Of a stretch of DNA of 64,000 nucleotides, positions 382 to 63,844 are shown one piece after another. The translations under genes and the position numbers were made by a program. The notes under the pieces were generated by a model. It did no database searches and was not told where the DNA came from. It was given only the letters and a program-made list of their open reading frames with translations. Position 1 is the first letter of the stretch. Every line of letters starts with the position of its first letter. The DNA is from Haliotis cracherodii (taxonomy: Eukaryota), in NCBI RefSeq assembly GCF_022045235.1, contig NW_027266266.1, positions 47,554,001-47,618,000 on the forward strand. The letters are read 5' to 3'.

Positions 382-1825
382 CGTTGGTGTCGAACCTTCC
401 GACAAACTCGATCAGCAGCTCCAGGTCGGAGATGTAGCGGTCTTTGTTGGTGTCCATGTCGACCATGACCATTTCGATGACGTTGTCTGCAGTCAGCTTC
501 TCAGCGTTGGAGTGGATGCAGTGCTGTATTGTGCCCTGCCTGTTGACGCAGGAAGAGGAAGATGTCATACCTTGACCACACCGTTACCATCGTTACCACA
601 GTATGACCACGCTGTTACCATCGTTACTAAAGCATGACCACGCCGTTACTATCGTTACTACAGTATGACCACGCCGTTACTATCGTTACTACAGTGTGAC
701 AACATCGTTACCACAGCCTGACCACGCCGTAACCATCGTTACTATAGTATGACCACACCGTTACTCATCGTTACTACAGTATGACCACATTGTTACCCCA
801 GTATGACCACACCGTTACCATCGTTACAAGAGTTTGACCACACCGTTACCATCGTTACTACAGTATGAACACATTGTTACCCCAGTATGACCACACCGTT
901 ACCATGGTTACAAAAGTACGACCAAATCGTTACCAGAGTATGACCAAATCGTTACCAGAGTATGACCACACAGTTACCATCGTTACCATAATATGACCAC
1001 ACCGTTACCATCGTTACTACAGTATGACAACATTGTTACCACAGTATGACTACACCGTAACCACAGTATGACCACGCCGTTACCATCGTTACTACAGTAT
1101 GACCACATTGTTACCCCAGTATGACTACACCCTTTCCTCAGCATGACCACCCGATCCATCTAGTCACCACTTACGACAAGCATGGTTTTCTGGAGACCTA
1201 TTCTAACCCGGAATCCCCACTGGAATATTATTCTCCAAGGTATCAAATCTACAATATTATACCTCCAAATATAAGGGAGCTAAATTTCAATATAATTTGT
1301 ATATTGTAGCCATATACATGATATAGCCAGAACATTGGGTTTCAAATTATATTTGTACAATATCATACCCCCAAATATAAAACACAACAGTTTCTCTTCT
1401 TGAACATCATCGTGATGCATCTGTTTGGTTGGGCATGCCTTATATATTTTAAGTGTAAGCTAATGTTGTGCTGTCAGGTTGACGGACTTTTTAAGAAAGA
1501 TGAAGGGCATCCTGATGGAATAGTTTGTTAATCGTTTCAGTATATATCCTCCTCCTATGGTGCGTTCAATCAGAAACATCGCCCCGATTGTTTCTAGGTT
1601 TGTCAGCACCATACCCGTGCTCGTGGGTTTCACCGAAGTGGTAAACGTCTGAGACCTGCATCACTTCGGGCTTTCCTCCCACATTAGCTGACACGCCGTG
1701 ATATGACTTGAATACTGTTAAAAGCGGCGTTAAACCCAACTCGCTCATTCACTCAATAAGAAACAGGCCAAGGTCACTCACCCGTAGGCCGACGCTGCGA
1801 GGAGAAGGACGCCGAACAAGAACAT
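382..1825 (-). CDS. Gene 1 (partial, runs off the left edge): secreted EF-hand Ca-binding protein. Exon 1 1782-1825, exon 2 382-539
   Basis: Exon 1 reads MFLFGVLLLAASAYG with a GG|GTGAGT donor. Exon 2 follows a tcaacag acceptor and reads QGTIQHCIHSNAEKLTADNVIEMVMVDMDTNKDRYISDLELLIEFVGRFDTN, ending G|GTAATC. Intron phases (2, 1) match genes 2-6. Confidence 0.88.
570..1150. repeat. Irregular minisatellite (core cagtatgaccacaccgttaccatcgttacta) in gene 1 intron 1
   Basis: Directly visible tandem units of about 20-31 bp starting ~30 nt upstream of the exon 2 acceptor. Confidence 0.9.
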
Positions 1826-1862
1826 GATGCTGGAAGATCAAGGTCAAGGTCATTGGCGATTT

Positions 1863-1870
1863 CTTATATA
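1863..1870 (-). promoter_or_regulatory. Candidate TATA box (TATATAAG) of gene 1
   Basis: Lies about 40 nt upstream of the ATG at 1825. An acceptor-like ttccag also sits 4 nt before the ATG, so an upstream non-coding exon is possible instead. Confidence 0.45.
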
Positions 1871-2067
1871 CTGATGCGACCGGTATACAATTTAGAGAGA
1901 CTGCATGAACTTTAAGAATGTCTAAACGCTATCGAGTGTACAAGTATGCTATGCTAAAGAAATGTCTGCCACAGAACCATATTTTTCTGAACACATAGGC
2001 GATGAAGGGAAAACAGTTTGTCAAACATCAATGGCGATTGAGGGTCAGTGTTATATGAAGTGAGGAG

Positions 2068-2236
2068 TGAGTGAGTGAGTGAGTATGGTTTTCCGCTGCT
2101 TTTAGCAATATTCCAGCAATATCACGGCGGGGGACACCAGAAATGGGCTTCACACATTGCACCCATGTCGGGAATCGAACCCGGGTCTTCGGCTTGACGA
2201 GCGAACGCTTTAACCACTAGGTTACTCGACCGCCCC
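2068..2236 (-). mobile_element. tRNA(Asp)-like SINE, family A. Other copies at about 5497-5661(-), 7808-7977(+), 11112-11277(+), 29788-29948(-), 33520-33676(-), 34652-34826(+), 52368-52522(+), 58095-58260(-)
   Basis: Head has A box TAGTGG and B box GGTTCGATTCCC around a GTC-anticodon-like arm (GTCACGC in most copies). Tail is (ACTC)n. This copy has a 16-bp TSD tatatgaagtgaggag (2052-2067 and 2237-2252). Confidence 0.9.
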
Positions 2237-4560: not shown

Positions 4561-4631
4561 TTTACAGACATTTATCATCATTACACCTTTACCAGTCTGT
4601 CATTTTCAGAGGTCCCAATATTTTTCGTCGG

Positions 4632-4930: not shown

Positions 4931-4950
4931 CTGTACAGCCCAGACTTAGC

Positions 4951-5340: not shown

Positions 5341-5343
5341 TGC

Positions 5344-5392
<49 letters not shown>

Positions 5393-7077: not shown

Positions 7078-7342
7078 NNNNNNNNNNNNNNNNNNNNNNN
7101 NNNNNNNNNNNNNNNNNNNNNNNNNNNNNNNNNNNNNNNNNNNNNNNNNNNNNNNNNNNNNNNNNNNNNNNNNNNNNNNNNNNNNNNNNNNNNNNNNNNN
7201 NNNNNNNNNNNNNNNNNNNNNNNNNNNNNNNNNNNNNNNNNNNNNNNNNNNNNNNNNNNNNNNNNNNNNNNNNNNNNNNNNNNNNNNNNNNNNNNNNNNN
7301 NNNNNNNNNNNNNNNNNNNNNNNNNNNNNNNNNNNNNNNNNN
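7078..7342. other. Assembly gap (other gaps at 21308-21560, 21570-21779, 61981-62117)
   Basis: Runs of N. Confidence 1.
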
Positions 7343-9057: not shown

Positions 9058-12000
9058 TCAGGCAGTGTTTTGATGTGAGAATGGCACACAGTCTTGATAC
9101 AGCTGAAACAACATGGCGACAATACACATCCTGCACATTATCTACCAAATGTATTGCGTCCTGGGTTACGCCGACTGTAACAATCTTCCCTGAGTACGCA
9201 TCCTCTGTATCTCCAGGGTTCGCATTTCGGTAAACCTATACTAACTCCTGGATCCAAATTCTCGCGATCTCAAATTACCTGTCCTTGATTTTCATAAGCC
9301 AATCTGATTTGTTACGCTACTCAGTCCAACGGACCAATCAAAATGCGAGTTAGAAAACAGCTGCAATGTTGGGTTGGCGATAGCATCGACATGGCTGCCA
9401 GTCCCATTGATTACGAAAGAATTGGCGAGAAATTCAACATTGAAATGCTACTGACTCGCAAAAGAAAGCCCTCGCAATTTTTTTAATGGAAACAGAGACC
9501 ATATACCGGTATATGGTCTCTGATGGAAAGGACGTCTCCCTGCCCAACTGGCGGTCACTTTGGTTTCTAGGCAATACGAGTTACCTGCCTTGCCCATTTC
9601 CTTTTGCCTTGATTGGTCGGTAAAAAGGTAATGGAACTCAAGGGCAGGTAATTTGAGATTGCGAGAACCATGGGATTTGGATCCAAAGCTGTACTGGAGC
9701 ATCACTTCTGGGGCGTGATTCCCAAAAGATGACAAAGTAGTGAAAATTATATGAATAGATCACCGAAAATCAGTGATGACACTAGGCTCTGGCCAAGGGT
9801 TAGGCATACCCTGCCCTACCGGTAGCACCCGCCACTCACGCAGTTAACATAAGAAACTAAGTGTTTTGTTGCCTGACTCCCCACAGCCATACGATCCAGT
9901 CTTATTTGGGGATTAAGCAGTCCTTGGAATGAACGCCCATTGATTACATTTAATGATCCAATTTTCTGCATCACAACTTTCTTCCATAAACCGTGAATTA
10001 TGAGATAATCATGATGTATTTCCTGATTTGCGGGTGTTTTTTTTACCCTTTCTTCGCCAACTGGACTTGACACGCTTATACCCAAGCACGGGTATGGTGG
10101 TGACAGACCTAGAAGCGTAATCTTGGCGACCCGGGATTCGAACCCACAAGTATAGATTTCTGGCGTCCCCAAAGGATGCGCAGCAAATTGCGTCGCCTTA
10201 GAGGACTGGGCGACCCGTCTCCCAAATTACACTGAAGAATTCAGGCTGTGTGTTGATACTCACGTGAGTCAAATATATAGTGAACTCAACGTCCGACACT
10301 TTGCCGTCATCTGGAAAGAAACAACAGGCAAATCACGAATAAGCACCAAACTTAAGTAGAGTGGATACCATGACATAGATAGACCCAGGTAGTAGATGGT
10401 AGTAATAAACACACGACAAAGATAACACCTTGATGTAGACGGTAGTCATAGAAACGGAGGATAACACCTTGATGTAGACGGTAGTCATAGAAACGGAGGA
10501 TAGCACGACATAGATAACATCTTGATGTAGAAGGTAGGGTAGTCATAGAAACGGAGGATAGCACGACATAGATAACACTTTGATGTGAACGGTGGTCATA
10601 GAAACGGAGGATAACACCTTGCTGTAGGCAGTAGTCATAGAAACGGAGGATAGCACGACATAGATAACACCTTAAGGTAGACGGTAGTCATAGAAACGGG
10701 GGATAACACGTCCTTGATAACACATGGATGAATATGTAGTCATAGAAGTTATATCTACTGGAAGGAGCTATTTTAATTCACTTTTGAAGGACTACCAGCG
10801 TCTCCAGTGAACAATATTAATTTTGTGTAAAACCTGACATTAAATATTATTTTCATTTATTTACTGGAAGACTACTCACGGTCCAGGTCCATAATGGCCT
10901 GGAGAGGAACGAAGTCAAACAGTCCGAGGAAATCATCGTTCGTTTGGTCCAGATGCTGGAAGATGTAGTCGGCAAAGTCCGGAACGTCACGGTATAACGC
11001 GTGCCATTTTGCAACAAACTCTCTCCTTGTGATCATACTGTCCCCTGGGGGTAGAAAGTAAATTCATGAATATATATGGTTCCATGTCATATCCTGTTTG
11101 TTAACCAGGACAGGGCGGTCGGGTAGCCTAGTGGTTAAAGCGTTCGCTCGTCACGCCGAAGACCCGGGTTCGAATCCCGACATGGGTACAATGTGTGAAG
11201 GCCATTTCTGGTGTCCCCCGCCGTGATATTGCTGTAATATTGCTAAAAAGCGGCGTAAAACCATACTCACTCACTCAACCAGGACAATTGTTTGTTTGTT
11301 GTTAATCGCCGCACTAAGCAATATTCCAGCTATATGACGGCGGTCTGGACCGGACAATCCACTGCTTGACACCATGAGCATCGATCCACGCAATTGGGAT
11401 TCGATGCAAGCATCAACCAAGTCAGCGCGCCTGATCACCCGATCCCGTTAGTCGCCTCTAACGACAAGCATAGTCGCCTCTTACGGATAGCATGGGTTGC
11501 TGAAGACCAAATCACGGTGTGTCAACTTGAGGTGTTATGAAAGCCTTGGCCAACTGGGACACACTTGCCCCTCTATTGACTATGGCATTGACTTCAGACG
11601 AGTACATATCAGTAAAGATCGGCTGGAAAACAAATAATGATTAGGACATATCATCTTTTATATCTCAAAAAGATACCAGTTTAGTGTTATTATACACTAC
11701 AGTATCAGTTGCAAAGCCGTTCAGTATCCACAAGCAACAGCAATATAGGTTGTTTTTTGTCTTAATTTCTGTTGAAGAAAGACAAGTTCTATGGATGAAC
11801 AACTTCTTTATTACAATTAGTGCGACATTTCGGTGTAGATCCTAACACCTTTATCAAGCAAGTGATGTTCATCCATAGAACTTGTCTTTCTTCATCACAC
11901 CAACTTCTAAATGCCACTGAAAGAACTGTTATCACTGAATGTTGGCGACCACATTTGATACCACAGGAATTCAAAATTCTGATTAAAACAATTGTGTCTT

Positions 12001-14676
12001 AAACTATCTACACCCTCCTTATGTTTTGTTCAGAGTGGGCTGTGTGATGGTAAAAGGCACACGAGTACAATATTTTAAGCAAAACTTCTGAATCGTGTAG
12101 TCAATAAAGATATCCATATATTTACCATTTGTATCAAACTTGCCAATAAACTCAATAATGACCTCAAGGGGTGAGAGTTCATGGTCGCCGTTAATGTCGG
12201 CGTCAGCAACGACCTTCTCGATGACGTTGTCAGCTGCCAGACTGTCCACGTTGCTGTGGATGCAGTGTTGTGGCCCCTGACTGTGGAGAGGAGATATGTA
12301 CAGACATGTAGACCTGGACATACTTCAAAATATGGCATCATGTTGCAATCTCAGTAAGATCAGATCTAAGTTAAAGATCCGCTCAACAAAGATCTGAGGA
12401 CACCCCATTACGGGTTACGCCAGAACGACCTTCCATCCGGCCAATCAGAGCCTCGCTCACCAGATCATGACAGTGACAGTCGGAATGCGTTTTCTAATCA
12501 TGCAGCCTCGAAACGGTCAACACGGGGTATTCCGAACTACAGCTACGGGCTTTAACGAATCCGTCAAAATCATCTCTCGCGTTAATGGAATTAATATTTA
12601 AACGGAAAGGAGGTACTGCCATACAATCTAGGCCATCTAATGGACATTTCAGAAGGTTCTTTTGTTCAGTTTTCGAATTTCGAATCGAGAACTTTGTCAA
12701 AATACTTTTCAAAGCCTTGTCGCCAGTTTGAAACTAGTGTTGTATTAGTTGCTTTCTAATTGGCTAATGTCGATTTCATGTTAGACATTTCATTGGTCGG
12801 TTAAAGTTCGCGAATGGTCGTTCTGACGCGATCTGTAATGGGATGTCAAAAGATCTTTGTTTTGCGGTAGTGCATTAAGTGCAGTATATGACATCATGCA
12901 TGATGCATTATATTAGTAGTGTATGTAGTGCAGTATGTAAAAACATGCATGACGCTTTATATTAGGCTTGGATGTAGGACAGTGTATGAAAGCATGCATG
13001 ACGCATTATCATATACTGATTCTGCTTATCTTACACTTGTTATATACTTGATTTCATTCATTGTTTGTGTATGGGGCTGTAATTTCCAGGCTCGACCCTA
13101 GCGCCACCAGTGGCTGTTACGAGTTATGTCCCTTCAATGTCCCTCCTACTGACCAATCTGATTCCATCTCTCATATCACTTGCATTTACTTTAAACAAAA
13201 TGGCGGCGCCCAGTCAAGACGATCTGATTTGTTTGTTTGTTGTTTAACGCCGCACAATATTCCAGCTATATGACGGTGGTCTGTAAATAATCGAGTCTGG
13301 ACCAGACAATCCAGTGATTGACATCATGAGCATTGATCCACGCAATTGGGATCAATAACATGCATCAGCCAAGTCAGCGAGCCTAACCACCCGATCCCGT
13401 TAGCTGCCTCTTAGTATAGTCGCCTTTTACGACAAGCATTGCTGCAGACCCATTCTACCCCGGATCTTCACGGGTCCAGGACGATCTGATTGATAATCAA
13501 GATCTATATTGTAATAAAACGGGTCTTACCCCGCGAAGTGCACCTTGATTAAAAGCTTGAAAAGTTTGCAAAATACCCGTCGACCGAAATCAGCACGTTG
13601 AAATCCATGTCGCTTACGAACCGGATGTGTAGTTCGATTTTGATTGGACTATGCATAGACTGGTTAGTCCAGCCGAAAAGTAACTCCATAATTACAGCCT
13701 AGTTCCGCAAAGGTGGAAACTTCCTTGCCTCGGGAAGATGGCAACGCGCGGAGAGCCAGTGGTCTGCTGACATGCTGGAAACTGGCATCAGTCAGCGTGC
13801 AGTCGCCAAAAAGTTCAATGTTTCTCAGTCTGTGATTAGTAGACTATAGAACGGGTACCAACAAATCCAAAATGTTGACGATGGACCCCGTTTAGGGCGT
13901 CCAAGGTCAACAACAGGAGCACAAGATCGATTGATCCAAAAGCAGGCTGTACGAAATCGAGCTCAATCAACAGCAAATCAAATTGCTGCAAACTTTTATT
14001 AGGCTACTGGAGTATGAATTACAGGTCAGACGATTAGACATCGTCTCCATACAGTTCATGTCCATGCTGGACGGCCACGTGTTGTGCCGCCCCCTACAAA
14101 TCGCCATATTGCCAACACACGGCAATGGTGTACACAACGTCGAAACTTGGGTAATCGTCGCTGGTTCCGATTCAGTCTGCACTTCCTTTGAAGGCGCGGT
14201 CGTATCAAGCGACATCGAAGTGAACGTCAAGCCAATATCAACCTGAAGGTGGCCAGGCCCTATAAGAGGAGTGGTAGCGACTCCCTCAAATCGCCATCAA
14301 AAGATTTCACTATTTCGCAATTCCTTATGTGAGACTTAGAACGTGCGAATCAACCATTTAACCTACTAATTCACACCTGTCGTTAAATGCTTCATACACA
14401 CGTCCCCCGTGAGAATTCCGGACAAGAATATTGCAGGCTCGGGGACTTGGTTGAGAGCGTGTCATCGAACCCAAACGGTGTGCGGATCGTTCTTCATAAT
14501 ATCGATCACTTGGGTGTCTGGTTCAGACTCAATTATTTACAGGCCGTCAAATAGCTGGAATATTGCAAACAACAAACACACAAAAAACACATTTACATAA
14601 TATGCTCATTATAAACCTAATTAACCACTCACCCGTACACGCCAACAGCGAGGAGAAGCGTTATAGCGAGGAACAT
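9058..14676 (-). CDS. Gene 2: secreted four-EF-hand protein, 151 aa. Exons 14633-14676, 12126-12280, 10880-11044, 10264-10310, 9058-9102
   Basis: All introns are GT-AG and the frame is continuous: MFLAITLLLAVGVYG QGPQHCIHSNVDSLAADNVIEKVVADADINGDHELSPLEVIIEFIGKFDTN GDSMITRREFVAKWHALYRDVPDFADYIFQHLDQTNDDFLGLFDFVPLQAIMDLD HDGKVSDVEFTIYLTH LYQDCVPFSHQNTA*. AATAAA at 8977-8982. Confidence 0.92.
10370..10745. repeat. Minisatellite (39-54 bp units, core ggtagtcatagaaacggaggata) in gene 2 intron 3
   Basis: Directly visible. Confidence 0.9.
11773..11950. mobile_element. Penelope-like pseudo-LTR inverted repeat with a degenerate hammerhead-like motif
   Basis: 29-bp inverted arms at 11773-11801 and 11866-11894. 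Minus strand reads TGC-TTGATAAA-GGTGT(taggatct)ACACC-GAAATGTC-GCA...AATAAA. Confidence 0.55.
12346..12870. mobile_element. Long-TIR MITE, older copy of the 44800-45299 element
   Basis: Colinear similarity over about 500 bp, including both TIR regions. Confidence 0.8.
13770..14245 (+). mobile_element. Decayed Tc1-like transposase N-terminal region in gene 2 intron 1
   Basis: Reads MLETGISQRAVAKKFNVSQSVISRL*...GPRLGRPRSTTGAQDRLI (paired-like HTH plus GRPR), then frameshifted TIRHRLH..HAGRPRVVP. Confidence 0.85.
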
Positions 14677-22029: not shown

Positions 22030-25000
22030 TCAGACGGGAGCCTGGTGGGTCTGGACACACTCGTTGTAAGCCTGGAACAAGACCGGAAGTGAGTGAGTGT
22101 GTTAAAACTTAACGTCGCATCGGCATTATGTCAGCCATATGGCGACGAGAACAAATAAATATCTACCCAGTGAGTCATGAATACAAAGTTATATTGGAAA
22201 CCAAATCTGTCAAACGTATTTGGGCACAAAAATATTATTCATACAGTATAAAATACGGGCTACATGCAAGACCGGAAGTGTTGGGCTTAAGACCCACCGA
22301 TTTCGGCAGCTGTATATCATCATCGTCGTCGTCGTCGTCCTCGTTTATTATTATTATTATTATTATTATTACGTACGTTTTCCAGGAAAATGGTGAACTC
22401 CACGTCAGTGATCTTGCCGTCATCTGTAAAGGGAGACAACTATGTCATTCCTATTAATGCATAACATATTCATGACACCGTGGACCCTTGGACAGTTTGG
22501 GGCAGTCAGGTAGCCTCGTGGTTAAAGCCACGAGCACGGGTATTGTGCTGACAAACCTAGAAACATAATTGGGGCGAACCGGGATTCGAACCCACAATCA
22601 TAGGTTTCTGGCGTGCCCAAGGGACACAACTCTGCACAGCGAATTGCGGCGCCTTAGACGAATGGGCCACCCGTGCCCCCTGTAGCTGAGACACACTGTA
22701 TGTGGTCCTGGGTTTGGTGTCCATTCTTCGTCTGAAGATAAAATGTCCTTTGTGCACTTAAGGACATGTTTCTACGTATTTTTGTTATTAGGGTATTTGA
22801 AGTTTCATATTTTGAAGTACACTCTTTAAAAAAAGAAACTCACAGGTAGTATGTAGTTCACTGAACCTGACTACAAAAACAATCCGGTATATAGATTATA
22901 TATTATGTTATTGGAAAATGTTGGTAGCCTGATATTCGACAAACGGTGCGTCAAAACGTAGCCATTGTCGATTTGCAATCATGTCTTTCACACTTGTTAA
23001 GAAAATGTCATGGAGGAAAACAAAAGCAAAATGCACGTGCCGAGGAGATGCAGAGCCGTGCTGCTGCCCGGGGCGGTCACACGAGATACTGAGTTCAGCG
23101 CAACCTTGTGGCTTTATGTGACATGACAATGAACAGTTTTCAATGCCTTTGTACAACGACAACATGTGACTATAGAGCTCCAAAATTTAATATTTGTATC
23201 TATGATATTAAATTAAATATATCGACTTTATTAGGTACAATAAATTTACAAAAAATCTACCTGTGTGTTGTTGTTTTTTTTAACAGTGTACATCATGAAA
23301 CTTTAGGTGGTTTATATGAATTTAAAGGTTCCTAATTATTGCGTAATTTTATTGAATCAAAACACAATGGCGTCCGTGAAGGGGAGATAACTAATGAAAA
23401 CTGTAAAACTGTACCGTTAAAACTGGGATAAAAAAACTAATTATCAAAGCCCTAATATATCACATCAAAATGCCCAGGACTCACGGTTGATGTCGACCTT
23501 GCCCTTCAGTCCCATCACGTCAAACAGGCCAAGGCTGTCGTCGCCGTTGGTGTCGAACTTGGTGAAGATGAAGGCGGCGAAATCGGGAGCGTCGTGGTAG
23601 GTGGCGTGCCATTGTGTAACAAACTCAGACTTGGAGATGGACAGACTACCTGTGAGAGAGAATCGGACGACTGTTAGTGAGAGAGTTGAAGGCCACTTTG
23701 AAGAGTATGTCGGTTGTATCATGTTTGTTTGTTTTTTTGTTTTTTAACGCCGCAATATTCCAGCTATATGACGGCGGTCTGTAAATAATCGAGTCAGGAT
23801 CGGACAATCCAGTGATTGACATCATGAGCATCGATCCACGCAATTGGGATACGATGACATGCATCAACCAAGTCAGCGAGCCTGACCAACCGATCCTGTC
23901 AGTCGCCTCTTACGACAAGCATAGTCGTCTAACTACTATGTTAACTACTGTGGTGAACTCCACGAGCACTGGTATGGAGTTGACAACTCCATCAACACAG
24001 GGATGGTGCTAACACACCCAGGAACACGAGTATGGTGTTGACAAACCCATCAACACGGATATGGTGAAACGTTGAAAAACATGTCATGCGATTAAAATAG
24101 GTTCAACAAAGAATTTTCAATGTGTATTGAACATAACCTACCGTCGTGATCGAAGTTTGTAACGAACTCGTTGAGGATTTCCATGTCTTCGACGATGCCG
24201 TCATTGTTGGAGTCCATGTCTTTGAGTGCCTGTTGGACGACGACGTCGGCGGTGTGTTTCATGGTGTTGCTGTGGATGCACTTTGGGTTGCTCAGCTGGC
24301 TGCAAGAGTTTCATGGTGTTATACTTTAGCTTTACCAAGCCGGCTGGAAGAGTTACATGGTGTTATACTTTGGCTGTATCAAGCTCGCTGGAAGAGTTAC
24401 ACGATGTCATACTTTAGCTTTACCAAGCCGGCTGGAAGAGTTACATGGTGTTATACTTTGGTTGTATCAAGCTGGCTGGAAGAGTTACATGGTGTTATAC
24501 TTTGGCTGTATCAAGCTCGCTGGAAGAGTTACATGGTGTTATACTTTAGCTTTACCAAGCCGGCTGGAAGAGTTAAATGGTGTTATACTTTGGTTGTATC
24601 AAGCTGGCTGGAAGAGTTACATGGTGTTATACTTTGGCTGTATCAAGCTGACTGGAAGAGTTACATGGTGTTATACTTTGGCTGTATCAAGCTGGCTGGA
24701 AGAGTTAAATGGTGTTATACTTTGGTTGTATCAAGCTGGCTGGAAGAGTTACAAAATGTTTTCCTTTGCTTGTATTAAGCTGTCTGGATGAATTTCACAA
24801 TGATTTACTTTGGTTGTATTAAGCTGTCTGGAAGAGTTACATATCGTTTTACTTTAGTTGTATTATGCTGGCCGGAAGAGTTGAAATATGTTTTACTTTA
24901 GTTGTATTAAGCTGTCTGGAAGAGTTACACCATGTTTTAGTTTGGTTGTATCAAGCCTGCTGGAAGAGTGACAAAATGTTTTCCTTTGCTTGTAATAAGC

Positions 25001-44638: not shown

Positions 44639-47600
44639 CTAACTTCCAGGAACACAATTCTTGTAGATCTGAAACCAGGAACACATATATGAAGATAAAT
44701 TCTAGGTTAATTAAATATTTTTAATTGTATGTGTGTTTATTTATGGTAAAGTATATGAAGAAATGCGGGAGTCTGTCTATACAGAAAGCCCTACAAACCC
44801 AATCTCATTAAAATCAGATCTTAGTTCTCGCTATCGCTAAACAAAGATCTGAGGACATCCCATTAAGGGTCACGTCAGAATGACCTTTCATCCAACCAAT
44901 CAGAGCCTCGCTTACCAGATCATGAAAGTGACAGTCGGAATGTGTTTTCTAATCATGCAACCACGAAATATTTAACACAGGGTATTCCGAACGACAGTTA
45001 CGGGTTTTATGATTATACACATACAATCTATAAGTTTCCAGAATGTTCTTCTCATCAGTTTTAATTTTTTGTAATCGAGAATACGTCAAAATATGTTTCG
45101 AAGCGTAGTCGCCAGTTTGAAACTAGTGTCGTAAAGCTCGAGGAATCTGCCTTCTGATTGGCTAATGTCGATTTCTTGTCAGTCATTTCATTGGTCGGTC
45201 AAAATTCGCGAAAGGTCGTTCTGACGTGACCCGTAATGGGATGTCCTCAGATCTTTGTTTAGCGGTAGCGAGAACTAAGATCTGATTTTAATGAGATTGC
45301 CACAAACCAGTCCACATGATAACATCATTTAAGAAGATATTTCTGTTGTTGATGAAGCCGAATATGTCATCAAAAGTAATTTGCTCTGAACCAGACAAAC
45401 CAGTGATCGATATTGTGAGCGATGTTCATAAACTATTTGTGACTAATCTATGACGTCATTGACGTCCTTATGACGTTATTTTGTACTGAGAGCATGTTGT
45501 TACTCACGTCGAGCATAAATGTTTGGAACTCGGCGTTAGACAATTTACCGTCACCTGAAACATAAGGGTGTACTTTGAACTTGGGGTGAGATCGGGTGAT
45601 CGAGTGGGTGAGGGAGTGTTTGTCGATGGCGCACTCAACAGTAGTCCAGCCATATCACGGCTTTATTAAAAGCTCGTGCTCGTGGGTTTCAAGTTGTAAA
45701 GTCTGAGACCTTCATCACTTCGGGTTTTTCCTCCCACGTTAAACACTGGGTGAAAAGCTAGATATATTTTCTTATCGGCGTAAAAAGATTAATATGGATG
45801 TTAAGTTACTATTTCATCGCTCAGCATATAATCCGACTTACCTTTCATTGCTAAAAGAATCATGTCGGTTATCACAAGCTTCACTTTTGCCTGCACATCC
45901 GAACACGTCATATTCCACTTGATAGTGGTGGCTATACTTACAGACGTAGACAAGAAACCAAGTACGATTCACGTTTGTTTGCTTGTTTAACGTCGCACTC
46001 GGCAATACTCCAGCTATATGACGGCCTGTAATTAGTCCAGTTTAGGCAGACAATCCAGTGATCGATATTGTGAGCTACGAACCTCGCCGTCAGGGTATGC
46101 TGACACGCAGTCAACCAAGCCACGGAACCTGACAACCCGATCCAATACGTCGGCATCGGTGGCTGATATTCAGTTGTAACCCGGAATCCCCACGGGGTCA
46201 GTGCGATTCAACCTGGTGGTGATTTTGTTTGTTTGTTGTTTAACGCCGCACTCAGCAATATTCCAGCTATATGACGGCGATCTGTAAATAATCGAGTGTT
46301 GACCTGACAATCCAGTAATTGACATCATGAGCATCTATCAACGCATTGGTGATACGATGACATGTATCAACCAAGTCAGCGAGCCTGACCACCCGATCCC
46401 GTTGGTCGCCTCTTACGGCAAGCATGGGTTGCTGAAGACCTATTCTAACCCGGATATTCACGGGTCGTATCTGTGGTGAGGATCTTTGGCTGCAATAGTT
46501 TCTAACAGTGGATGAAGTGGCCACAACTCTCACCGTTGCTGTCAATCTCTGCTTGAAGACCGAGGAAGTCGGCAGATGTTAGTTTCAGGTCATCGTTCTT
46601 GTCGAAGTGGTGGAAGAGATAGATGGCGAAGTCGCGCCCGTCATGGTACCGCAAGATCCACTGAATCACAAATTCCGCCTCCGAGATCTCACTGTTGTCT
46701 GTGAATTTGTGTCATCATTATAGAGATTGCTGCACTAGTACCCGTTAGATACCGTTTATATCACAACCAGTGTGTTTCAAGACGTATCTAACCACCCAAA
46801 CGTTTTATTTGTCTGTTTTTCGTCACTGATCTGAATCATACAATTATCTTCTCAGTGGCGAGGAGCCAACAGTACGTACATTGTACATGGTGCCACATTG
46901 CATTTGCTCCGGGCATCCATTAAACAATAAATAAAAAAATATATTTCAGTACGTTCTGGATCAAATTGTTATTCCAAGATGACCCCATTGGTCTTATCTC
47001 AGAAGAAGGTGGGGACACTGAAATTATATTTGTTTGATAGTTGTTCAACTCCGCACGTATGACGGCTGCCTATAAATATTAAAATTTTAAAAGACAAAAT
47101 GAATAATGCATTTCCCCTGCATCCCCGATCCGCCAGCACGTGCTATACATTCACACACCACATGCTTACACAACAATCACCTCCGGGATGTTACATTGAC
47201 ACTCTAACAAGCACAACAAAGAACTACACAACCATCAACTCAAAGAGATTACATTGCCATTCTAAAATGCACAACAAAGAACTACACAACCATCAACTCA
47301 AAGAGATTACATTGCCATTCTAAAATGCACAACAAAGAACTACACAACCATCAACTCAAAGAGATTACATTGCCATTCTAAAATGCACAACAAAGAACAA
47401 CACAACCATAAACTCAAAGAGATTACATTGCCATTCTAAAATGCACAACAAAGAACTACACAACCATCAACTCAAAGAGATTACAATGCCATTCTAAAAT
47501 GCACAACAAAGAACATCACAACCATCAACTCAAAGAGATTACATTGCCATTCTAAAATGCACAACGAAGAACTACACAACCATCAACTCAAAGAGATTAC

Positions 47601-50466
47601 ATTGCCATTCTAAAATGCACAACAAAGAACAACACAACCATCAACTCAAAGAGATTACATTGCCATTCTAAAATGCACAACAAAGAACTACACAACCATC
47701 AACTCAAAGAGATTACATTGCCATTCTAAAATGCACAACAAAGAACTACACAACCATCAACTCAAAGAGATTACATTGCCATTCTAAAATGCACAACAAA
47801 GAACAACACAACCATCAACTCAAAGAGATTACATTGCCATTCTAAAATGCACAACAAAGAACAACACAACCATCAACTCAAAGAGATTACATTGCCATTC
47901 TAAAATGCACAACAAAGAACTACACAACCATCAACTCAAAGAGATTACATTGCCATTCTAAAATGCACAACAAAGAACAACACAACCATCAACTCAAAGA
48001 GATTACATTGCCATTCTAAAATGCACAACAAAGAACTACACAACCATCAACTCGAAGACTTTACGTTGACATTGTGAAGTGCACAACAGGAAACAACACA
48101 ACCATCAACTCATAGATTTTACGTTGACATTGTGAAGTGCACAACAGGAAACTACACGACCATCAACTCGAAGAGTTTACGTTGCCATCCTAATATGCAC
48201 AATGCACGTTACATATCAACAAACGTGTTTGCACACTAACATTCTACACAACCGTCAACCCGAAGATTTTACGTTTGCATTCTTAAGTTCACATCACAGA
48301 ACTACACCACCGTCAACCCGAAGATTTTACGTTTGCATTCTTAAGTTCACATCACAGAACTACACAGCCGTCAACCCGAAGATTTTATGTTTGCATACCT
48401 AACTTCACGTAGGAGAAAAACACAATCATCAACTCGAAAATATTTACATTCTCAAATTAAAATCAAAGAACTACATGACTATCAACTCAAAGATTTTACG
48501 TTTACTTCTTGAATTCACATCAACGAACTACGCAACCGTCAACCCGAAGATTTTACGTCTACATTAGTAAATCACACCCCAGAACTATGCAACCACTAAC
48601 CCGAAGATTTTAGGCTTACATTTGCAATGCACAAAATAGCCACTCAACCATCAACACGAAAGCTTTAGGTTTAAATTCTTAAATGTAAACTACACAGATG
48701 TTTGCACAGGAAAGATTAACACAACTACCAACTAGCAGATTTACGTTCCCATTAACAAACACATCAATGAACGACACAGCTGTCACATGGAAGATGTTAC
48801 GTTTACGTTCACACGTGCAGATGGGCATCAGTGTGTAGCATCTTTACGGGTGTTGGGAAGATTGCAGTATGTTATATGTGTTCAGATGATAAACAATGCG
48901 TACTGTCACTGTCGTATCTTGTGACGAACTCGGAAACGACTTCACTCTGCTCCAATGTGCCGTCGCCATTTTTGTCCATGTCATTGATGATGTTGCGGAC
49001 GGCGAGGTAAGGGGAGAAATTAAGGCTGGTTTGGATACAACCCTGCTGGCGGAGATTGTGAGCAAGGCTGGCGAAGAATCATATAAACCTTTTAGACAAA
49101 AGACACAGATTTATAATGACGGAATATTGAAGACTTAATCAGAGAGAAATGTCTTTTGTGAAACTGACTCAACATCATCCAATTTCCGAAACACCACCAT
49201 GTGTCACTCAACCACACAGTGTGACAGATCCGAGTCTCCATCACGTGTCACACAACCATACTGTGCTACAGATCCGAGTCTCCACCACGTGTCACTCAAC
49301 CACACAGTGCAAGAGATCCGAGTCTCCATCACGTGTCACTCAAACAAACAGTGCTACAGATCCCAGTCTATATCACGTGTAACACAACCATACTGTGCTA
49401 CAGATCCAAGTCTATATCACGTGTCACACAACCACACAGTACTACAGATCCGAGTCTATATCACGTGTCACACAACCACACAGTACTACAGATCTGAGTC
49501 TATATCACGTGTCACACAACCATACTGTGCTACAGATCCGAGTCTTCATCACGTGTCACTTAACCACACAGTGCAAGAGATCCGAGTCTCCATCACGTGT
49601 CACTCAAACACACAGTGCTACAGATCCCAGTCTATATCACGTGTCACACAACCATACTGTGCTACAGATCCAAGTCTATATCACGTGTCACACAACCACA
49701 CAGTACTACAGATCCGAGTCTATATCACGTGTCACACAACCACACAGTACTACAGATCCGAGTCTATATCACGTGTTACACAACCATACTGTGCTACAGA
49801 TCCGAGTCTTCATCACGTGTCACTTAACCACACAGTGCTACAGATCCGAGTCTTCATGACGTTTCACTTAACCACACAGTGCTACAGATCCGAGTCTATA
49901 TCACGTGTCACACAACCACACAGTACTACAGATCCGAGTCTATATCACGTGTCACACAACCATACTGTGCTACAGATCCGAGTCTTCATCACGTGTCACT
50001 TAACCACACAGTGCTACAGATCCGAGTCTATATCACGTGTCACACAACCATACAGTGCTACAGATCCCAGTCTCCATCACGTGTCTCTCATCTCAACCAT
50101 ACTGTGCTGCAGATCCGAGACTCCATCACGTGTCACTCAACCACACAGTACTACAGATCCGAGTCTATATCACGTGTCACACAACCATACGGTGCTACAG
50201 ATCCGAGTCTTCATCACGTGTCACTCAACCACACAGTGCTACAGATCCGCGACTCAACCACCTACCACTCAATCTTACAGTGCTTGCCTTTGCATGTGTT
50301 TATGACGGATGCCCCCGGTTGAGGGATACGAGATACCGTCCCCATTTTTGCGAACACCTGGTGTCATCCCCAGTTAACAATGATTCATATACACGTGTTC
50401 ATGATTGACTCACCCATGCACTGCTGCAGATCCGAGAAGTAGAAAGACAAGGCGGAGATCAGGCAT
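44639..50466 (-). CDS. Gene 5: secreted four-EF-hand protein, 152 aa. Exons 50414-50466, 48904-49067, 46534-46698, 45508-45554, 44639-44668
   Basis: MPDLRLVFLLLGSAAVHG LAHNLRQQGCIQTSLNFSPYLAVRNIINDMDKNGDGTLEQSEVVSEFVTRYDSD NNSEISEAEFVIQWILRYHDGRDFAIYLFHHFDKNDDLKLTSADFLGLQAEIDSN GDGKLSNAEFQTFMLD IYKNCVPGS*. AATAAA at 44626-44631. Confidence 0.92.
44800..45299. mobile_element. MITE with ~90-bp TIRs and a probable 9-bp TSD (Mutator-like) in gene 5 intron 4
   Basis: CAATCTCATTAAAATCAGATCTTAGTTCTCGCTA... at both ends in inverted orientation. Flanks are ctacaaacc and ccacaaacc. Confidence 0.85.
46224..46466 (-). mobile_element. Non-tRNA SINE-like retroposon, family D. Other copies at about 8012-8190(+), 11288-11510(-), 13228-13477(-), 20686-20946(+), 23722-23930(-), 30211-30432(+), 30964-31142(+), 35874-36040(-), 44220-44430(+), 45975-46197(-), 61500-61737(-)
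   Basis: Dispersed ~245-bp repeat, often 5'-truncated, with an (AAAC)n tail and the same 3' end as families A-C. No A/B boxes in the head. Confidence 0.85.
47210..48800. repeat. 58-bp minisatellite in gene 5 intron 2; homogeneous to ~48050, then degenerate
   Basis: Unit gaactacacaaccatcaactcaaagagattacattgccattctaaaatgcacaacaaa. Confidence 0.95.
49198..50260. repeat. 44-bp minisatellite in gene 5 intron 1
   Basis: Unit acgtgtcacacaaccatactgtgctacagatccgagtctatatc. Confidence 0.95.
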
Positions 50467-57113: not shown

Positions 57114-60100
57114 CTACCGCCCATGATGAGTAACACAGTTTGTGTAGAGCTGAAATGTGAAATGTGAAACAGTTAGTATATCTCCAAGAAAGGGTGGGAG
57201 ACACAGACAGTCGCCCACTTTGTCGTCATAAACATCGAAACACTTATTATATATACATATTTCATAGCAATAAAAAAAAATCGATATGTTATTCAATCAT
57301 TACATCCCCCAACCTCAATGAAGAAATCTATACAATGTCATCATAAATTCCTATCTGTACATTTCCCTCCATATTAATACATCGATACTATGGCGGGATA
57401 ATGAGGCAGCATCGCTGCTTCCCTTTCTTGACATGAAGAGTACGTTTTGAATCTAAAATAAATAATAGTTCACGTGACTTACGTTGGTCAAATAGGCCTG
57501 GAACTCTGAGACTGAGACGTTACCATCACCTGTAAGACATTATCAGGAACCATGTCTAAGATGTATAGAGATATATGATATCCTAATCATCACGGGACTC
57601 GCAATATGTCAGTGAGGGAACGTTCACCAGAAATTTCAGGAGGGGAATTGTGACCAATTGCAATGGTCTTAAGACGAAATATCTTAATTTCATGTTAAGA
57701 AGGAATGTCAGACTGCCACCCAAATCCAGATTATTAAGCACATACCATCAATGTCAAGGGACAACTCCAGAGCGGCGATGTCACCGTCGGTCAGTTTCAA
57801 GTCGTCGTTTATGTCGAAGTGGTGGAAGAGGTAGCTGGCGAAGTCGTGTTCGTCGTGGTAGTGCTGATGCCACTGCTTTACAAACTCATCCTCGGAAATC
57901 TCGCCGTTACCTGTAACCATATCAACACCATCGACATACGTTGGACTTATACACTGGCTATAGCTCACCTTCACGAAGTCATTCGTTCGTCCCTCAACCT
58001 GATCTGTGAACGTCATTGTCTTTGGCTTTGAGCAAGTAGAATTGCCATTGTGAAGTCTTCATAAAATATGTCAATGAACACATAATCGTATCAGAGTGGG
58101 TGAGTGAGTATGGGTTTACGCCACTTCTAGCAATATTCGTGCAGTATCACGGCGGGAGACACCTGAAATGGGCTTCACACATTGTACCCATGTCGGGAAT
58201 CGAACCTGGGTCTTCGGCGTGACGAGCGAACGCTTTAACCACTAGGCTACCCCACCACCCTTGTTGTATCAGAACGATGGGCGGCATAGGTTTAGGACAT
58301 ATCGAACGCTTACATTTTTATCCACTATAGGTGAGCTTCTGTACCTCTGGTACTATGGGACGTTATATATCACCGCTGCCTGGACGATACAAGAATAACC
58401 GACACGACTGTTCATGAATATACAAAACTAACAAAAGCATGTCGATCTGACTTCTATATCGGTCATACAGTGACACCTCATTGGTCTGGACAGGACCGTT
58501 CCCAGTGAAGACGCCAGATTAAAGAGTGTCTACATAAATGTAGACGTACCCGCTAGTAAACATCCGGATGACATCACTCGGCCAAATCACACAGTCTATT
58601 CCCATTTAGTCAGCTCATAAGACAAGCATGGGATACTTGGATTTAGTTAGAGACCTTTTTCTCTGCTTCTAAGCACACCATTTCAATGTCTGAGAAAGGG
58701 GAAGTCGAATAATTTAATTCATTCACAATGCAATTTTTCAGGACATTCCTATTTCGTAAATATGAGGAAGTAATATTGTTTATCAGCATTATCGAAATTG
58801 AATAAATATTTTAAAATAAACAAACCCAGCTTCCTCCCAACCCCCTACTCCAACCGCCACCCCCATCCCTCCCCCATTTCGAACATTAAATTGTCTCTCC
58901 TTTACCGTCATGGTCGTATTTGGTGACGAATTCAGCCATGACTTCAGCCTGTGTCACAGCGCCGTCGCCATCTTTCTCCATGTCGACGATGACGCTGGCG
59001 ATCACCTGGTTTGCCGTCATCTGCTGGTGGTTGTTATGGATACAGGAGTGCACGTGACCGTGACCGTGACCATGACCTTGCCTGAAGGTAGACGATGTAT
59101 GATTGTCTCTGGCAATGACAGATACATATAGAACATATAGATACACGAGTTGATTGATAGCTTCTGAGCCTCACATCGAAAGACTTGACCAAAAGACATT
59201 AACATATAGTTTTCAACATACATCCCATTCCACATTGAAACATTTTGCCAACGATATTGGAAGGATTCTATCCCAGCTTCTCTTGGCTGTCCAAAATGTG
59301 TTCCACAGCTGATATGACGTCATTGTTCGAGCCGATATTGGTTCTTTATGTTTAGGAACAGATGAAAGTGTGAAGGCGCCATCCCAGGAGAATAGGTAGG
59401 CGCTGAAGGGCTGTGGTCATAACAGTAATTGATTTGTGCACTGGTGCATTGTTATGATGGAGGAGCGCACCTATTCTACAGCTTCATATGTCTCTTAGAC
59501 TTAATTTCCCGTAATTGACTCACAGGTGCAATATCATATGCTCCGTTTATTGTTTGATCGTTTGGAAGATAGCCCACCATGATGGCGCCCTCGGCATCCC
59601 AGAAAATGGGGGTCATAACTTTTCCCCCTGATGGGACAGTCATTTCCATGCTTCCAATGGTCTGATTGTTGGTTGGACTTATGCTGAAGGAGGTGAACCA
59701 AGGTTTTATAGATTGTCAAAATTGTTGCAAGAACCTTTCTGGATCAGTTTCAAACAGAGATACATTATCTTGAGACACGTTGTGCCTGGTGTGTTTTTAG
59801 ATCAGCTATAACATCCGACGAGCTGATAATTTCTTCATTGACAAATTATCTGTGATAATGGATTCGACTCTCTCCTGGAAAATGCTATTGAACTAACCGT
59901 ATGACGCTCATTCATTCGCCAGTCGGCCATCATCATATCGTGGATTCTCGGGATCATTTCTGGGTTTGCTGACGTGACGGGCCTTTCAGGACGGGAAACT
60001 CCTACCTCGTTTCGAATGCATATAGAGGGGCTTCCTTCCCTGGTGTTGTACTCATATCTTCATGGGTGTTTTCCAGCAGCTCCAGCCTTTGGTGTTTACA

Positions 60101-61452
60101 TTTCGTAACTTTTGAGATACAATTTAAGTATAATTCTTCTACCAAGATTTCAAAGAGCGTCATACGACACTTGCTCAGAAGTTGCTTGATCAAGGTTACA
60201 ACATTCAAGGCCTCGGTAAAGCTTTCAGGTTTATGGTAGACATGTGGAGGACATTTCAAACTTTGAAGCATCCGTGACAAAAATGATGTACCATACGTTC
60301 CCATGTTCCAAGGAACAGTTGACTTGCCTTTGCATGTGTTGGGTGGCGGGTGCCACCGGTGGGGCAGTATACGCTCACAGTTTCGAGAACACCTGGTATC
60401 GTTACTATTTGATAGTAATTCATAACCACATGCTCATGATATAGTCGGAATTGTACAATCGAGTCTGCTTTATGGAGAGATTTCTACTGGATATGGAAAG
60501 GGGTTTGTCGCTTTATTTTTAGGTTTGAGCCCTTTTTCTACAACTACTTGATCACTGTACGTTCCTTAAGTTTGTTCATTTTCCAAAGGTCACAGACCCC
60601 TGAATACTTTACTAAATATTTATGTGACTTGTCACAGTGAAACAATTTGCTTAGTGGAGATGCTTCTATGACATCCCACAGATGACACCCTTACCTTGTC
60701 AGCTTCAGGTTAACCTCTTTGGTCATGTGGACAAGGCGTCCGACCTCTGCTCAGAAGGTCCGTGGTTCCAATCCCATCACGGGACTCGGAAATCTTATGG
60801 CCGCTACATTGGTGCCCAACATGGAGCTGAGCGCGTTCACATTAAATTTGAGCAAAATAAGTCTCAGTACCCTACTATGCGGTCCGGGACGTGCCTTCTG
60901 TTGACGGGAAAGTATGGAGCAGGGCGTGGTGTCATCCCACAGATGACATCCTTACCTTGTCAGCTTGCTGACGGGGTTAACCTCTTTAGTCATGTGGACA
61001 AGGCGTCCGACCGATGCGCAGAAGGTCCGTGGTTCGAATCCAATCACGGGACTCGGAAATTTATGCCCGCTACACCAGATTTCGCAGTTCCTTCTATGTT
61101 AGGCGCAGAACTTATCAACGTGAGTGGGCAGCTACTGATCTACTCCACCCTTAGCAACAATCCAGCCATATATCTGGCAGACATGAAAACTGAAATCCGA
61201 ATCTTCATTTAGACGGGCGGCTGCTTCAACCACTGGGCTATCCCAATGCTCCATCATAATGTTTTATAGTAACTGGCCTAATATTTGATATAATTGCCTC
61301 ATACAATTTTGAAATGTTGGACATTGTAGTATATATAATTCACCCAAATATCGACACATTGCCGACTACAACAGTTTGGTTTTGCACATTATACCATGGA
61401 ACACTCACCCATATACTGACGCAGCTCCGAGTAGAAGAAGGAATACTGTCAT
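57114..61452 (-). CDS. Gene 6: His-rich secreted four-EF-hand protein, 155 aa. Exons 61409-61452, 58906-59081, 57746-57910, 57483-57529, 57114-57149
   Basis: MTVFLLLLGAASVYG QGHGHGHGHVHSCIHNNHQQMTANQVIASVIVDMEKDGDGAVTQAEVMAEFVTKYDHD GNGEISEDEFVKQWHQHYHDEHDFASYLFHHFDINDDLKLTDGDIAALELSLDID GDGNVSVSEFQAYLTN LYTNCVTHHGR*. AATAAA at 57097-57102. Confidence 0.93.
60669..61074 (+). mobile_element. Miniature non-autonomous LTR retrotransposon (TRIM) with tRNA-like LTRs (Helenus-like)
   Basis: Direct repeats TG...CA at 60669-60808 and 60930-61074. PBS TGGTGCCCAACATGGAGC at 60810-60827. Purine-rich tract just before LTR2. A and B boxes inside each LTR. No TSD seen. Confidence 0.8.
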
Positions 61453-62989
61453 GGTTGCTGAAACACATGATGGACATCAATCTAAGAATATATGATTTAT
61501 GTTTTTGTTTATTTGTTGTTTAACGCCACACAAAAGCAATATTCCAGGTATGTGACGGAGGTCTGTAAATAATCTGGAGTCTGGACCAGACAATCCGCTG
61601 ATTGACATCATAAGCATCGATTCACGCAATTGAGATTCAATGACATGGATCAACCAAGTCAACTAGCCTGATCACTCGATCCCGTTAGTCTCCTCTTACG
61701 ACAGAGCATGGGCTGCTGAAGACCTATTCTAATCCGGTGTTTATCCCAATGAATTGTGACCCCAGTGAATGTGAGTGTTGTGGTCTAATGTCTGCCGTGA
61801 TTATGTTCATGGAGTGACACAAAAGGAGCACGTTTTGGTATAATGGACTGAATCAGCGCAGCTAGCAGTATTCTGTTCATAACATGAAACGGTATCGTGC
61901 ACGTTGCTTCAAGGTTTGAAGATTGCACATGGGACGTGCGCACACAGTAAAATTGGTTGAACTACAAACCCGGTATAAGTNNNNNNNNNNNNNNNNNNNN
62001 NNNNNNNNNNNNNNNNNNNNNNNNNNNNNNNNNNNNNNNNNNNNNNNNNNNNNNNNNNNNNNNNNNNNNNNNNNNNNNNNNNNNNNNNNNNNNNNNNNNN
62101 NNNNNNNNNNNNNNNNNCAATAACAGTTCACGTGGTGTTAGAGAAGGTGACGGGGTTTGGGTATATACAAGAACTAGCAAGTGTTGACAGTACACGTGGT
62201 TTTAAAGTGAATAGGTAAATATTGCTTGAAGCCTCATCAACAATATTGCAATGTAACCCTGTGTACAAGATCTAGCACGTGTTGACAGTTAACGTGGCGT
62301 TAGAGGAGGAGACGACATCTGGGTATGTACAAGAACAAGAAAAACCTAAATTCACATTGCAATTGGTGGATGTGGTCAAGCGGAGCTAACCTGAAACAGA
62401 CGTTTGGATCTCTACGTGCACACATTACCTTTTGAAAGAGACAAAAACAATGTAAAAATGGATGTTTCACTGAGACTATTATCTCTTGGCTTGATAAAGG
62501 AGTGTTGCATGGAGTACCATAGTTCATAGCTGATTTGATATTCAGGTCACGAGGTCAGGTCATGGACTACAAGATAAGATAGAAGAAAAATGCTGCTGAA
62601 ACATCTATGTGGTCGGGTAAGAAACATGGTTTTGGAGCAGGGTACGAAGCCTCGATATGCACAAGAAGTATCTAGGCATCAGCTACAATTAAGGCTTAGT
62701 ATTTGCTTCGGTAAAGGCGGCATGGGCCTATTATAACATAATGCGCCAGACAATATATAAAAGAAGTTGACATGTGTTTCTTTCTTGGATAAATACTTGG
62801 CTAAATGGTTGATTATATTAGGGTTGCTGGACGAGTTTATGGTGAGTGGGAAGAATGATAATGTTCTTCGGAAGAATGCTATTTCCTACAGTTTCCTAGA
62901 GAGGACAAAGCATACCAAAGTGACTCTATCAATGGAATAATACCAAAAGGGATGTTTCAGTTTTCCGGTGTAATATGATGTATTTATAT

Positions 62990-63560
62990 TCTCTACATGC
63001 ACGTGTGTATGTGGCCCACAATTCTATACATTAACGTGTGTATGTGGCTCACATTTTTCTTCATGCACGTGTCGATGTGACCCACAATTATATACATTAA
63101 CATGTGTATGTGGCCCACATTTTTCTTCATGCATGTGTCGATGTGACCCACAATTCTCTACATGCACGTGCCGATGTGACCCACAATTCTATACATGCAC
63201 GTGCGTATGTGGCCAACATTTGCCTTCATGCACATGTCGATGTGAGTCATAATTCTCCTCATGCACGTGTGTATGTGGCCCACATTTTTCTTCATGCACC
63301 TGTCGATGTGACCCACAATTGTCTACATGCATGTGTCGATGTGACCCACAATTCTATACTTTCACGTGTGTATGTGTCCCACATTTTTCTTCATGCACGT
63401 GTCGATTGGTCCCACAATTCTTTAACTGCACGTGTTGATGAGGCCCACATCTTTCTTTATGTACGTGTCGATGTGACCCAAAATTCTCTACATATACGTG
63501 TCTGTTGCTCATATTTCTCTTCATGCACATGTTGATGTGACAAACAATTCTGGACCTGCA
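62990..63560. repeat. Degenerate 33-bp minisatellite
   Basis: Unit gcacgtgtgtatgtggcccacatttttcttcat. Confidence 0.9.
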
Positions 63561-63811
63561 CGTGCACGTGTCACCCTGCTACTTTTTATGTACGTGTCTA
63601 TGTCATCCAGGTGAGCTAGTTCTCGATACAGACACAGACACAAACACGCATGTACGCACGCACGCATGCACGCGCACACGTGTGTTTTCACAGACGCACA
63701 TACGCAGTCACCGTTGCTAGTATGTACGTTGCTATATGGTGATGGATACATTAACTAAATAAAAAGGAAACATGTTGTGATTGTAAAATAAGTGCTTTAA
63801 TATCTCTGTTG

Positions 63812-63844
63812 TCACCCATGAAAGCTGACACAGTTTTTGTAGAG
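63812..63844 (-). CDS. Gene 7 (partial): terminal exon LYKNCVSFHG* of a further paralogue lying beyond the right edge
   Basis: acatttcag|CTCTACAAAAACTGTGT is nearly identical to the gene 6 exon 5 junction. TGA stop; ATTAAA at 63796-63801. Confidence 0.8.
   Translation of the reverse strand, partial: LYKNCVSFHG

Follow-up and report, generated by a model that had tools for sequence, protein, structure and literature searches.

What kind of protein is made, and to what use, from a run of related EF-hand genes that spans a 64,000-bp stretch of the genome of the black abalone Haliotis cracherodii (C3:47554001-47618000; 41.7% G+C, four runs of N) is the question raised by this locus. The stretch in its full length is referred to below as the window; it makes up the leftmost third of a tandem array that numbers at least 18 genes and lies close to the end of a 49-Mb contig (C3:47.55-47.86 Mb). 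The interpretation favoured here, to which we give about an even chance, is that the array encodes soluble, acidic proteins, calcium-binding or matrix components that work outside the cell in shell-forming or other secretions, and that these are of the insoluble matrix shell protein 5 (IMSP5)-like, or SMP5, kind found in lophotrochozoans.

Extent and annotation of the array

Seven co-oriented minus-strand paralogues were recovered from the window in an independent rebuild, for which gene D was read base by base and then served as seed for tblastn and splice-site scans. Five genes are complete (A, 61452-57114; B, 50466-44639; C, 35675-30822; D, 25237-22030; E, 14676-9058), and the two that are cut by the window edges, F and G, are full-length in the genome, being completed just beyond those edges. 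The window has seven strict matches to the EF-hand pattern PROSITE PS00018, every one of them on the minus strand, and 100 composition-preserving shuffles yielded 0.04 on average and never more than 1. An exon-3 profile matched each of the five window copies with E-values of 1e-26 to 4e-29 and, across the whole genome (80 contigs, 1.18 Gb), identified 18 copies, all on the minus strand, over ~307 kb (C3:47,553,662-47,860,481), a figure that is a lower bound for the copy number of the array. Fourteen genes are intact in the 258 kb read (F, E, D, C, B, A, G, H1-H5, I2 and I4); two further copies, both outside the window, are incomplete, I1 being without exon 4 and I3 without most of exon 3, and to the right of 47,798,000 the array is represented by the exon-3 loci L012, L014 and L018 alone. 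Right of G (C3:47630001-47798000; loci L025-L041), the array takes the form of a higher-order repeat of ~36 kb with one H-type and one I-type gene per unit, which occurs at least five times at 91-99% identity.

A sequence-only reading of the same DNA had proposed seven minus-strand paralogues, five of them complete, with GT-AG splicing, intron phases 2,1,1,0, no stops or frameshifts and an array continuing past both edges, and each of these points was recovered in the rebuilt models; of the limits it had given, 382 marks the F exon 2 donor and 63844 the acceptor of G's final exon. Its description of the array as hidden fails, because the genes are already in NCBI RefSeq. Model B is letter-identical to XP_071093552.1, 'calmodulin-like [H. 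cracherodii]' (P0002, retrieved with exon-3 profile A1 from 1.84 billion representative proteins), and model E is identical to XP_071093548.1, 'uncharacterized protein' (P0154). The names given automatically in RefSeq, such as 'calmodulin-like' and 'calcium-dependent protein kinase 27-like', mislead as to what these genes are.

Gene structure

Each gene comprises five coding exons, every intron is GT-AG, the phases are 2,1,1,0 in all five complete genes, and none of the window copies contains an internal stop or frameshift. An AATAAA hexamer lies 8-76 nt 3' of the stops (ATTAAA for G). In almost all copies an acceptor, (t)ttcag, is found 4-5 nt before the ATG, which makes a sixth, 5' non-coding exon likely, and on this sequence evidence most copies probably carry one. 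An exon upstream of D is in frame and would add 24 residues before the predicted signal peptide, as in H. rufescens isoform X1 (P0151), where it is used. The exons are listed below in window coordinates, all on the minus strand.

61409..61452, minus strand: A exon 1, with ATG, predicted signal peptide MTVFLLLLGAASVYG and phase-2 donor
58906..59081, minus strand: A exon 2, with (GH)4 stretch, first Cys, EF1 and start of EF2
57746..57910, minus strand: A exon 3, with remainder of EF2, EF3 and start of EF4
57483..57529, minus strand: A exon 4, with remainder of EF4
57114..57149, minus strand: A exon 5, with second Cys and stop; AATAAA 12 nt downstream
50414..50466, minus strand: B exon 1, with predicted 18-aa signal peptide ending HG; whole model equals XP_071093552.1
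48904..49067, minus strand: B exon 2
46534..46698, minus strand: B exon 3
45508..45554, minus strand: B exon 4
44639..44668, minus strand: B exon 5, with stop; AATAAA 8 nt downstream
35632..35675, minus strand: C exon 1
34841..34989, minus strand: C exon 2
32954..33118, minus strand: C exon 3
32260..32306, minus strand: C exon 4
30822..30854, minus strand: C exon 5, proximal copy, encoding AYNECVQTHG and a stop; the H. rubra orthologue P0152 ends alike save for the last residue (S for G)
30578..30619, minus strand: C last exon, second tandem copy, encoding AYNECEVTHHRPE and a stop, with its own acceptor, stop and AATAAA
25907..25974, minus strand: D upstream exon, in frame with exon 1; probably a 5' untranslated exon
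25194..25237, minus strand: D exon 1
24142..24299, minus strand: D exon 2
23485..23649, minus strand: D exon 3
22377..22423, minus strand: D exon 4
22030..22071, minus strand: D exon 5, with stop; AATAAA 27 nt downstream
14633..14676, minus strand: E exon 1; whole model equals XP_071093548.1
12126..12280, minus strand: E exon 2
10880..11044, minus strand: E exon 3
10264..10310, minus strand: E exon 4
9058..9102, minus strand: E exon 5, with stop; AATAAA 76 nt downstream
1782..1825, minus strand: F exon 1
382..539, minus strand: F exon 2, with donor at 382; exons 3-5 intact outside the window (C3:47553825-47550851)
63812..63844, minus strand: G last exon, with acceptor at 63844; exons 1-4 intact outside the window (C3:47626865-47618696)

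None of the three intergenic assembly gaps, when checked against the models, overlaps an exon or a coding intron. The first (7078-7342) lies between E and F, the second (21308-21779) begins ~250 nt 3' of the D stop and past the polyadenylation hexamer of that gene, and the third (61981-62117) lies between the last exon of G and the ATG of A, ~530-660 nt upstream of the latter, where the 5' non-coding exon or promoter of A is expected. An assembly gap could hide an unread gene copy.

The sequence between the exons is rich in repeats. Long minisatellites (units of 23-58 bp, 17-93 copies) occur in most of the longer introns and intergenic spacers of the window (24294-25046, 49201-50249, 47191-48202, 33770-34533, 32324-32833, 31604-32180, 53292-56367, 36794-37867 and 50615-51542); several yield long spurious open reading frames on both strands, and the repeats differ between gene copies at comparable positions. 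Short elements are dispersed on both strands (e.g. 16333-16808, 22557-22757, 39457-39664, 5516-5728 and 7723-7923), and their translations share the motifs '...QSCVPWA.QKPMIVGSNPGSP...' and '...GSLVVKAFA.HAEDPG..PDMG...', giving them the appearance of short interspersed elements. Between D and C is part of a DDE_3 (Tc1/mariner-type) transposase (26858-27202, minus strand; Pfam PF13358, 38 bits).

Protein features

The precursors are 145-155 aa long and all copies have four EF-type loops, which in B start at about residues 49, 70, 105 and 125 and are spaced by ~21/35/20 residues across the family. Pfam EF-hand_1 (PF00036) matches B with 47.6 bits and E with 37.0 bits (cutoff 25.4); single exons score below the cutoff because the introns split loops 2 and 4. 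Two departures from the strict loop are seen, namely Asp at position 12 of loop 3 in every window copy and Glu as the starting residue of loop 1 in the A, G and H types. The N-terminus is hydrophobic over 15 aa, or 18 aa in B, and its last two residues are YG or HG, with A or V at -3 and G at -1, and each complete protein contains exactly two Cys, 120-121 residues apart. The computed isoelectric point (pI) of the mature proteins is 4.3-4.8, and the C-termini of the complete genes (THHGR, CVPGS, QTHG, HQAPV and HQNTA) include no KDEL or HDEL. Judged by the signal-like N-terminus, the Cys pair, the acidic pI and the lack of a retention signal, the proteins look secreted. Some members are rich in His, A with GHGHGHGH and 16 His, G with GHGHAHAH and the H type with HHHHH directly after the predicted signal peptide. 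The 15-18 aa signal-like N-terminus ending in (Y/H)G, the two Cys, the missing KDEL/HDEL, the polyadenylation signal and the four EF loops had all been read correctly from the DNA at the outset, with the Glu that starts loop 1 of A as the one deviation.

Predicted structure

A model of B was obtained with AlphaFold2 from 22 family sequences, with a predicted local distance difference test score (pLDDT) of 81.8, values above 90 over most of the mature part and values below 50 at residues 1-4 and 18-23. Six helices (37-48, 58-69, 79-90, 94-104, 114-124 and 134-147) are arranged around the four loops. The model reads as a fold in which EF1 would pair with EF4 and EF2 with EF3, helices 58-69 and 114-124 being common to both pairs, and in which the conserved N- and C-terminal Cys are positioned to join the ends of the chain, probably as a disulfide staple. 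In VIA-align, one calmodulin lobe (68 residues) was superposed on residues spread over 36-143 at 1.6-2.3 A, and the contiguous stretch 52-129 also matched an EF pair. Foldseek returned no match in the PDB at E <= 0.001; the top TM-scores were those of lanmodulins (PDB 8dq2 and 8fns; TMt 0.43-0.46, probability 0.99, E ~0.01), and the whole-chain comparison with calmodulin gave a TM-score of ~0.2.

Evolution and relatives

The window paralogues are 37-81% identical, and for most paralogue pairs the ratio of non-synonymous to synonymous substitution rates (dN/dS) falls within 0.1-0.5, the deep pairs being saturated in dS; the youngest repeat copies, H1 and H4, have a dS of 0.04 and a dN/dS of 0.9. 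For each of B, C, D and E, H. rufescens or H. rubra has a one-to-one orthologue, with ~80-100% amino acid identity. The family is thus under purifying selection, and the divergence of the copies together with their one-to-one orthologues indicates that the duplications are ancient and have been kept, and that the H/I unit has multiplied in a recent burst. More distant relatives were found in H. asinina, other gastropods and bivalves. In the tree, the array splits into the clades (A, G, H, I, B) and (C, D, E, F); the first also takes in H. asinina P0007, and two Gigantopelta proteins adjoin the second with moderate support and long branches. Lottia, Patella, a single-copy Haliotis paralogue (P0025/P0155 type) and the bivalve sequences are placed outside the array clades. 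That single-copy paralogue is represented in H. cracherodii by an exon 3 at 23.3 Mb (L019, C3:23304768-23307890), which belongs to a distant paralogue with the same Cys pair and is orthologous to H. asinina P0025 and H. rubra P0155 ('calcium-binding protein E63-1-like', 144 aa). Two other weak matches in the same genome (L020 and L021) were set aside as other EF-hand-like exons outside this family.

Both Cys are kept in the aligned gastropod members, the aligned bivalve members are without the C-terminal Cys, and the N-terminal mature segment is hypervariable in the paralogue alignment. Two adjacent genes were found in Lottia and single matches in Patella, both counts being lower bounds. The sequence-only reading had called the copies well diverged and the family lineage-expanded; the identities, the dN/dS values and the Haliotis orthologues agree with the former, and the contrast between at least 18 copies in H. 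cracherodii and the one or two seen in the limpets, on those lower bounds, agrees with the latter.

Profile-level affinity with shell matrix proteins

The abalone shell has long been a model system for biomineralisation but, to our knowledge, only a few of its soluble components that bind calcium have been traced to genes. A link from the array to this field is provided by Lingula P0033, a match to the exon-3 profile, which clusters with P0171, an 'insoluble matrix shell protein 5-like' protein. Aligned with P0171 by hhalign, the family profile A3 gave a probability of 98.3% (E 1.3e-14) over 97 collinear columns that take in all four loops with one 1-residue gap, so that the link to insoluble shell-matrix EF-hand proteins proposed for checking from the DNA holds at profile level. 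In other collections, the nearest ESM Atlas clusters to B are mollusc EF-hand clusters of 133-145 aa, the 60 best PDB sequence matches were of the generic calmodulin type only, and a homologue search from the oyster member P0156 returned only unnamed fragments and no named 'SMP5'.

Hdh-SMP5, from H. discus hannai, is the one abalone protein of the kind that has been studied. It is a secreted EF-hand protein of 134 aa, is acidic (pI 4.31) and carries a signal peptide, and its loops were reported at 36, 56 and 112 (PMC10741955). Its expression peaks in mantle, trochophore and veliger and is induced by shell repair (PMC10741955). Its relation to the array is a lead, not a result.

Proposed mode of action and alternative explanations

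In the mode of action that we infer for these proteins, a signal peptide of 15-18 aa would be cleaved after (A/V)-(Y/H)-G to release an acidic protein of 14.5-16 kDa, whose four EF loops would be held on six helices as two pairs with two helices in common, probably stapled by a disulfide between the N- and C-terminal Cys. In a seawater-like fluid with ~10 mM Ca2+ such a protein would be constitutively calcium-loaded, and permanent loading would make it a matrix or binding component rather than a calcium switch. An additional capacity for metal binding or pH response is suggested by the His-rich tags found in the A, G and H types. A family of extracellular calcium- or metal-handling proteins serving biomineralisation, mucus or adhesion, or immunity, with sub-functionalised members, had been proposed from the DNA, and that functional interpretation, taken as a whole, is partly supported.

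Several points weigh against an IMSP5-like role. The signal peptide was called by the -3/-1 rule only, and the departures in loops 1 and 3 mean that some EF sites may not bind calcium. The IMSP5 link depends on the automatically assigned name of Lingula P0171, and the loop positions of Hdh-SMP5, which are compatible with the spacing of the array family, were compared by description and not by sequence. The term 'EF-hand' is absent from the abalone shell-proteome papers returned by a text search, and no literature naming these loci was found by LOC/XP identifiers or, for the relatives, by Lottia gene numbers. Searches of the literature on IMSP5 and on abalone mucus proteomes likewise found no link to the array proteins.

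One alternative is that the proteins are extracellular binders of transition metals, or pH-responsive binders, in which a His-tagged EF scaffold would serve for Zn, Cu, Ni etc. and the amplification of the H type would reflect selection for dosage. The His-rich N-terminal tags in the A, G and H types speak for it, as do the position of the H type within the recently amplified 36-kb repeat (at least five units, H1/H4 dS 0.04) and the top place by Foldseek TM-score of the lanmodulins, a group of compact metal binders with four EF-hands. However, the tags are confined to one clade and B, C, D, E and F do without them, the EF loops are of the ordinary calcium type and lack the lanmodulin loop proline, and lanmodulin is not among the 50 best VIA-align rows, its Foldseek E-value being only ~0.01. 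We consider this explanation unlikely.

It is also improbable, in our estimation, that the array encodes secreted proteins of defence, of mucus and adhesion or of chemical communication with no role in the shell. Big, tandem and fast-diversifying secreted families are typical of immunity and of secretions, and the hypervariable N-terminal mature segment would fit such a use, but dN/dS never reaches 1 and Haliotis species have kept one-to-one orthologues, so that nothing hints at an arms race. The proteins have no domain besides the EF-hand, and the search of the mucus-proteome literature found no mention of proteins like these.

That the products might be intracellular calmodulin-like sensors, or calcium buffers of the endoplasmic reticulum or secretory pathway, is suggested by the NCBI automatic names, by the generic character of the EF-hand matches and by calmodulins being the closest PDB sequences. 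This we regard as very unlikely, given that every copy and the aligned gastropod relatives have the hydrophobic N-terminus with its -3/-1 motif, that the Cys pair is conserved, and that there is neither a KDEL/HDEL end nor a transmembrane segment; the six helices instead of eight, the loop spacing and the whole-chain TM-score of ~0.2 also depart from calmodulin. A mostly silent or decaying array, with frames kept open through youth or gene conversion, is hardly credible: I1 and I3, outside the window, are incomplete and the youngest pair has a dN/dS of 0.9, but copies at 37-81% identity with saturated dS keep frames, splice sites, Cys pair and loops all intact, with dN/dS mostly 0.1-0.5 and one-to-one orthologues in other species.

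A bolder possibility, which we put forward as a long shot, is that the array represents an undescribed EF-hand architecture, with interlocked pairs sharing two helices and an N-to-C disulfide, forming an extracellular animal analogue of lanmodulin whose His-tagged paralogues have been amplified in the 36-kb repeat to meet the animal's high demand for a secreted carrier of metal or calcium. If true, the interlocked architecture could give unusually tight or selective metal binding. The predicted helix-sharing four-site fold is without a solved representative and, if confirmed, would bear on the structural biology of EF-hands and on the design of metal-binding proteins. The genes themselves, at least 14 of them intact in the sequence read, provide a defined, Haliotis-conserved set of compact predicted secreted calcium binders, some of them naturally His-tagged.

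Comparison with known EF-hand proteins

Calmodulin resembles the array products in having four EF loops in ~150 aa and matching the Pfam EF-hand, and each half of the model fits one calmodulin lobe. The loops of calmodulin are spaced by ~36/37/36 residues, whereas those of the array are spaced by 21/35/20 on six helices rather than eight, in a protein with a signal-like N-terminus and a Cys pair, and membership of the calmodulin family was rejected on the N-terminus, the helix number, the loop spacing and the whole-chain TM-score of ~0.2. The model has no central linker, and calmodulin-style clamping of a target by two lobes is therefore unlikely. Membership of the CREC family (~300 aa or more, six EF-hands and an HDEL-like end) was also rejected, the array proteins having 145-155 aa, four loops and no HDEL/KDEL.

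Lanmodulin, a bacterial periplasmic lanthanide binder, is likewise compact and exported, of ~12-15 kDa, with four close EF loops that share helices. Its loops are uniformly spaced by ~24 residues and contain prolines, whereas the array has the 21/35/20 spacing and no Pro at loop position 2. Homology was rejected, with no lanmodulin among the 60 best PDB sequence matches, and lanmodulin, whose resemblance in fold is modest, is kept as an analogue.

Closer in kind are the secreted EF-hand proteins of shell-forming animals. The Pinctada fucata (pearl oyster) protein EFCBP, which reportedly has two EF-hands, can be likened to the array products by description as a secreted mollusc EF-hand protein. 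It was proposed to be an extracellular EF-hand protein for shell formation (Huang et al. 2007, as cited in PMC6231486). The IMSP5/SMP5 proteins share with the array a length of ~130-160 aa, an acidic character, a signal peptide (predicted in the array) and several EF-hand loops, and Lingula P0171 has the same collinear four-loop module with a spacing of ~20/35/20. What the locus holds is thus partly known already, since the genes are annotated and secreted EF-hand proteins of this kind have been described in molluscs; the subfamily itself is new. The size of the array, the predicted Cys-stapled, helix-sharing fold and the amplified His-tagged paralogues are worth follow-up. Set beside the IMSP5/SMP5 proteins, the array represents a distinct gastropod subfamily, marked by the N- and C-terminal Cys pair, by at least 18 copies and, in some members, by His-rich tags.

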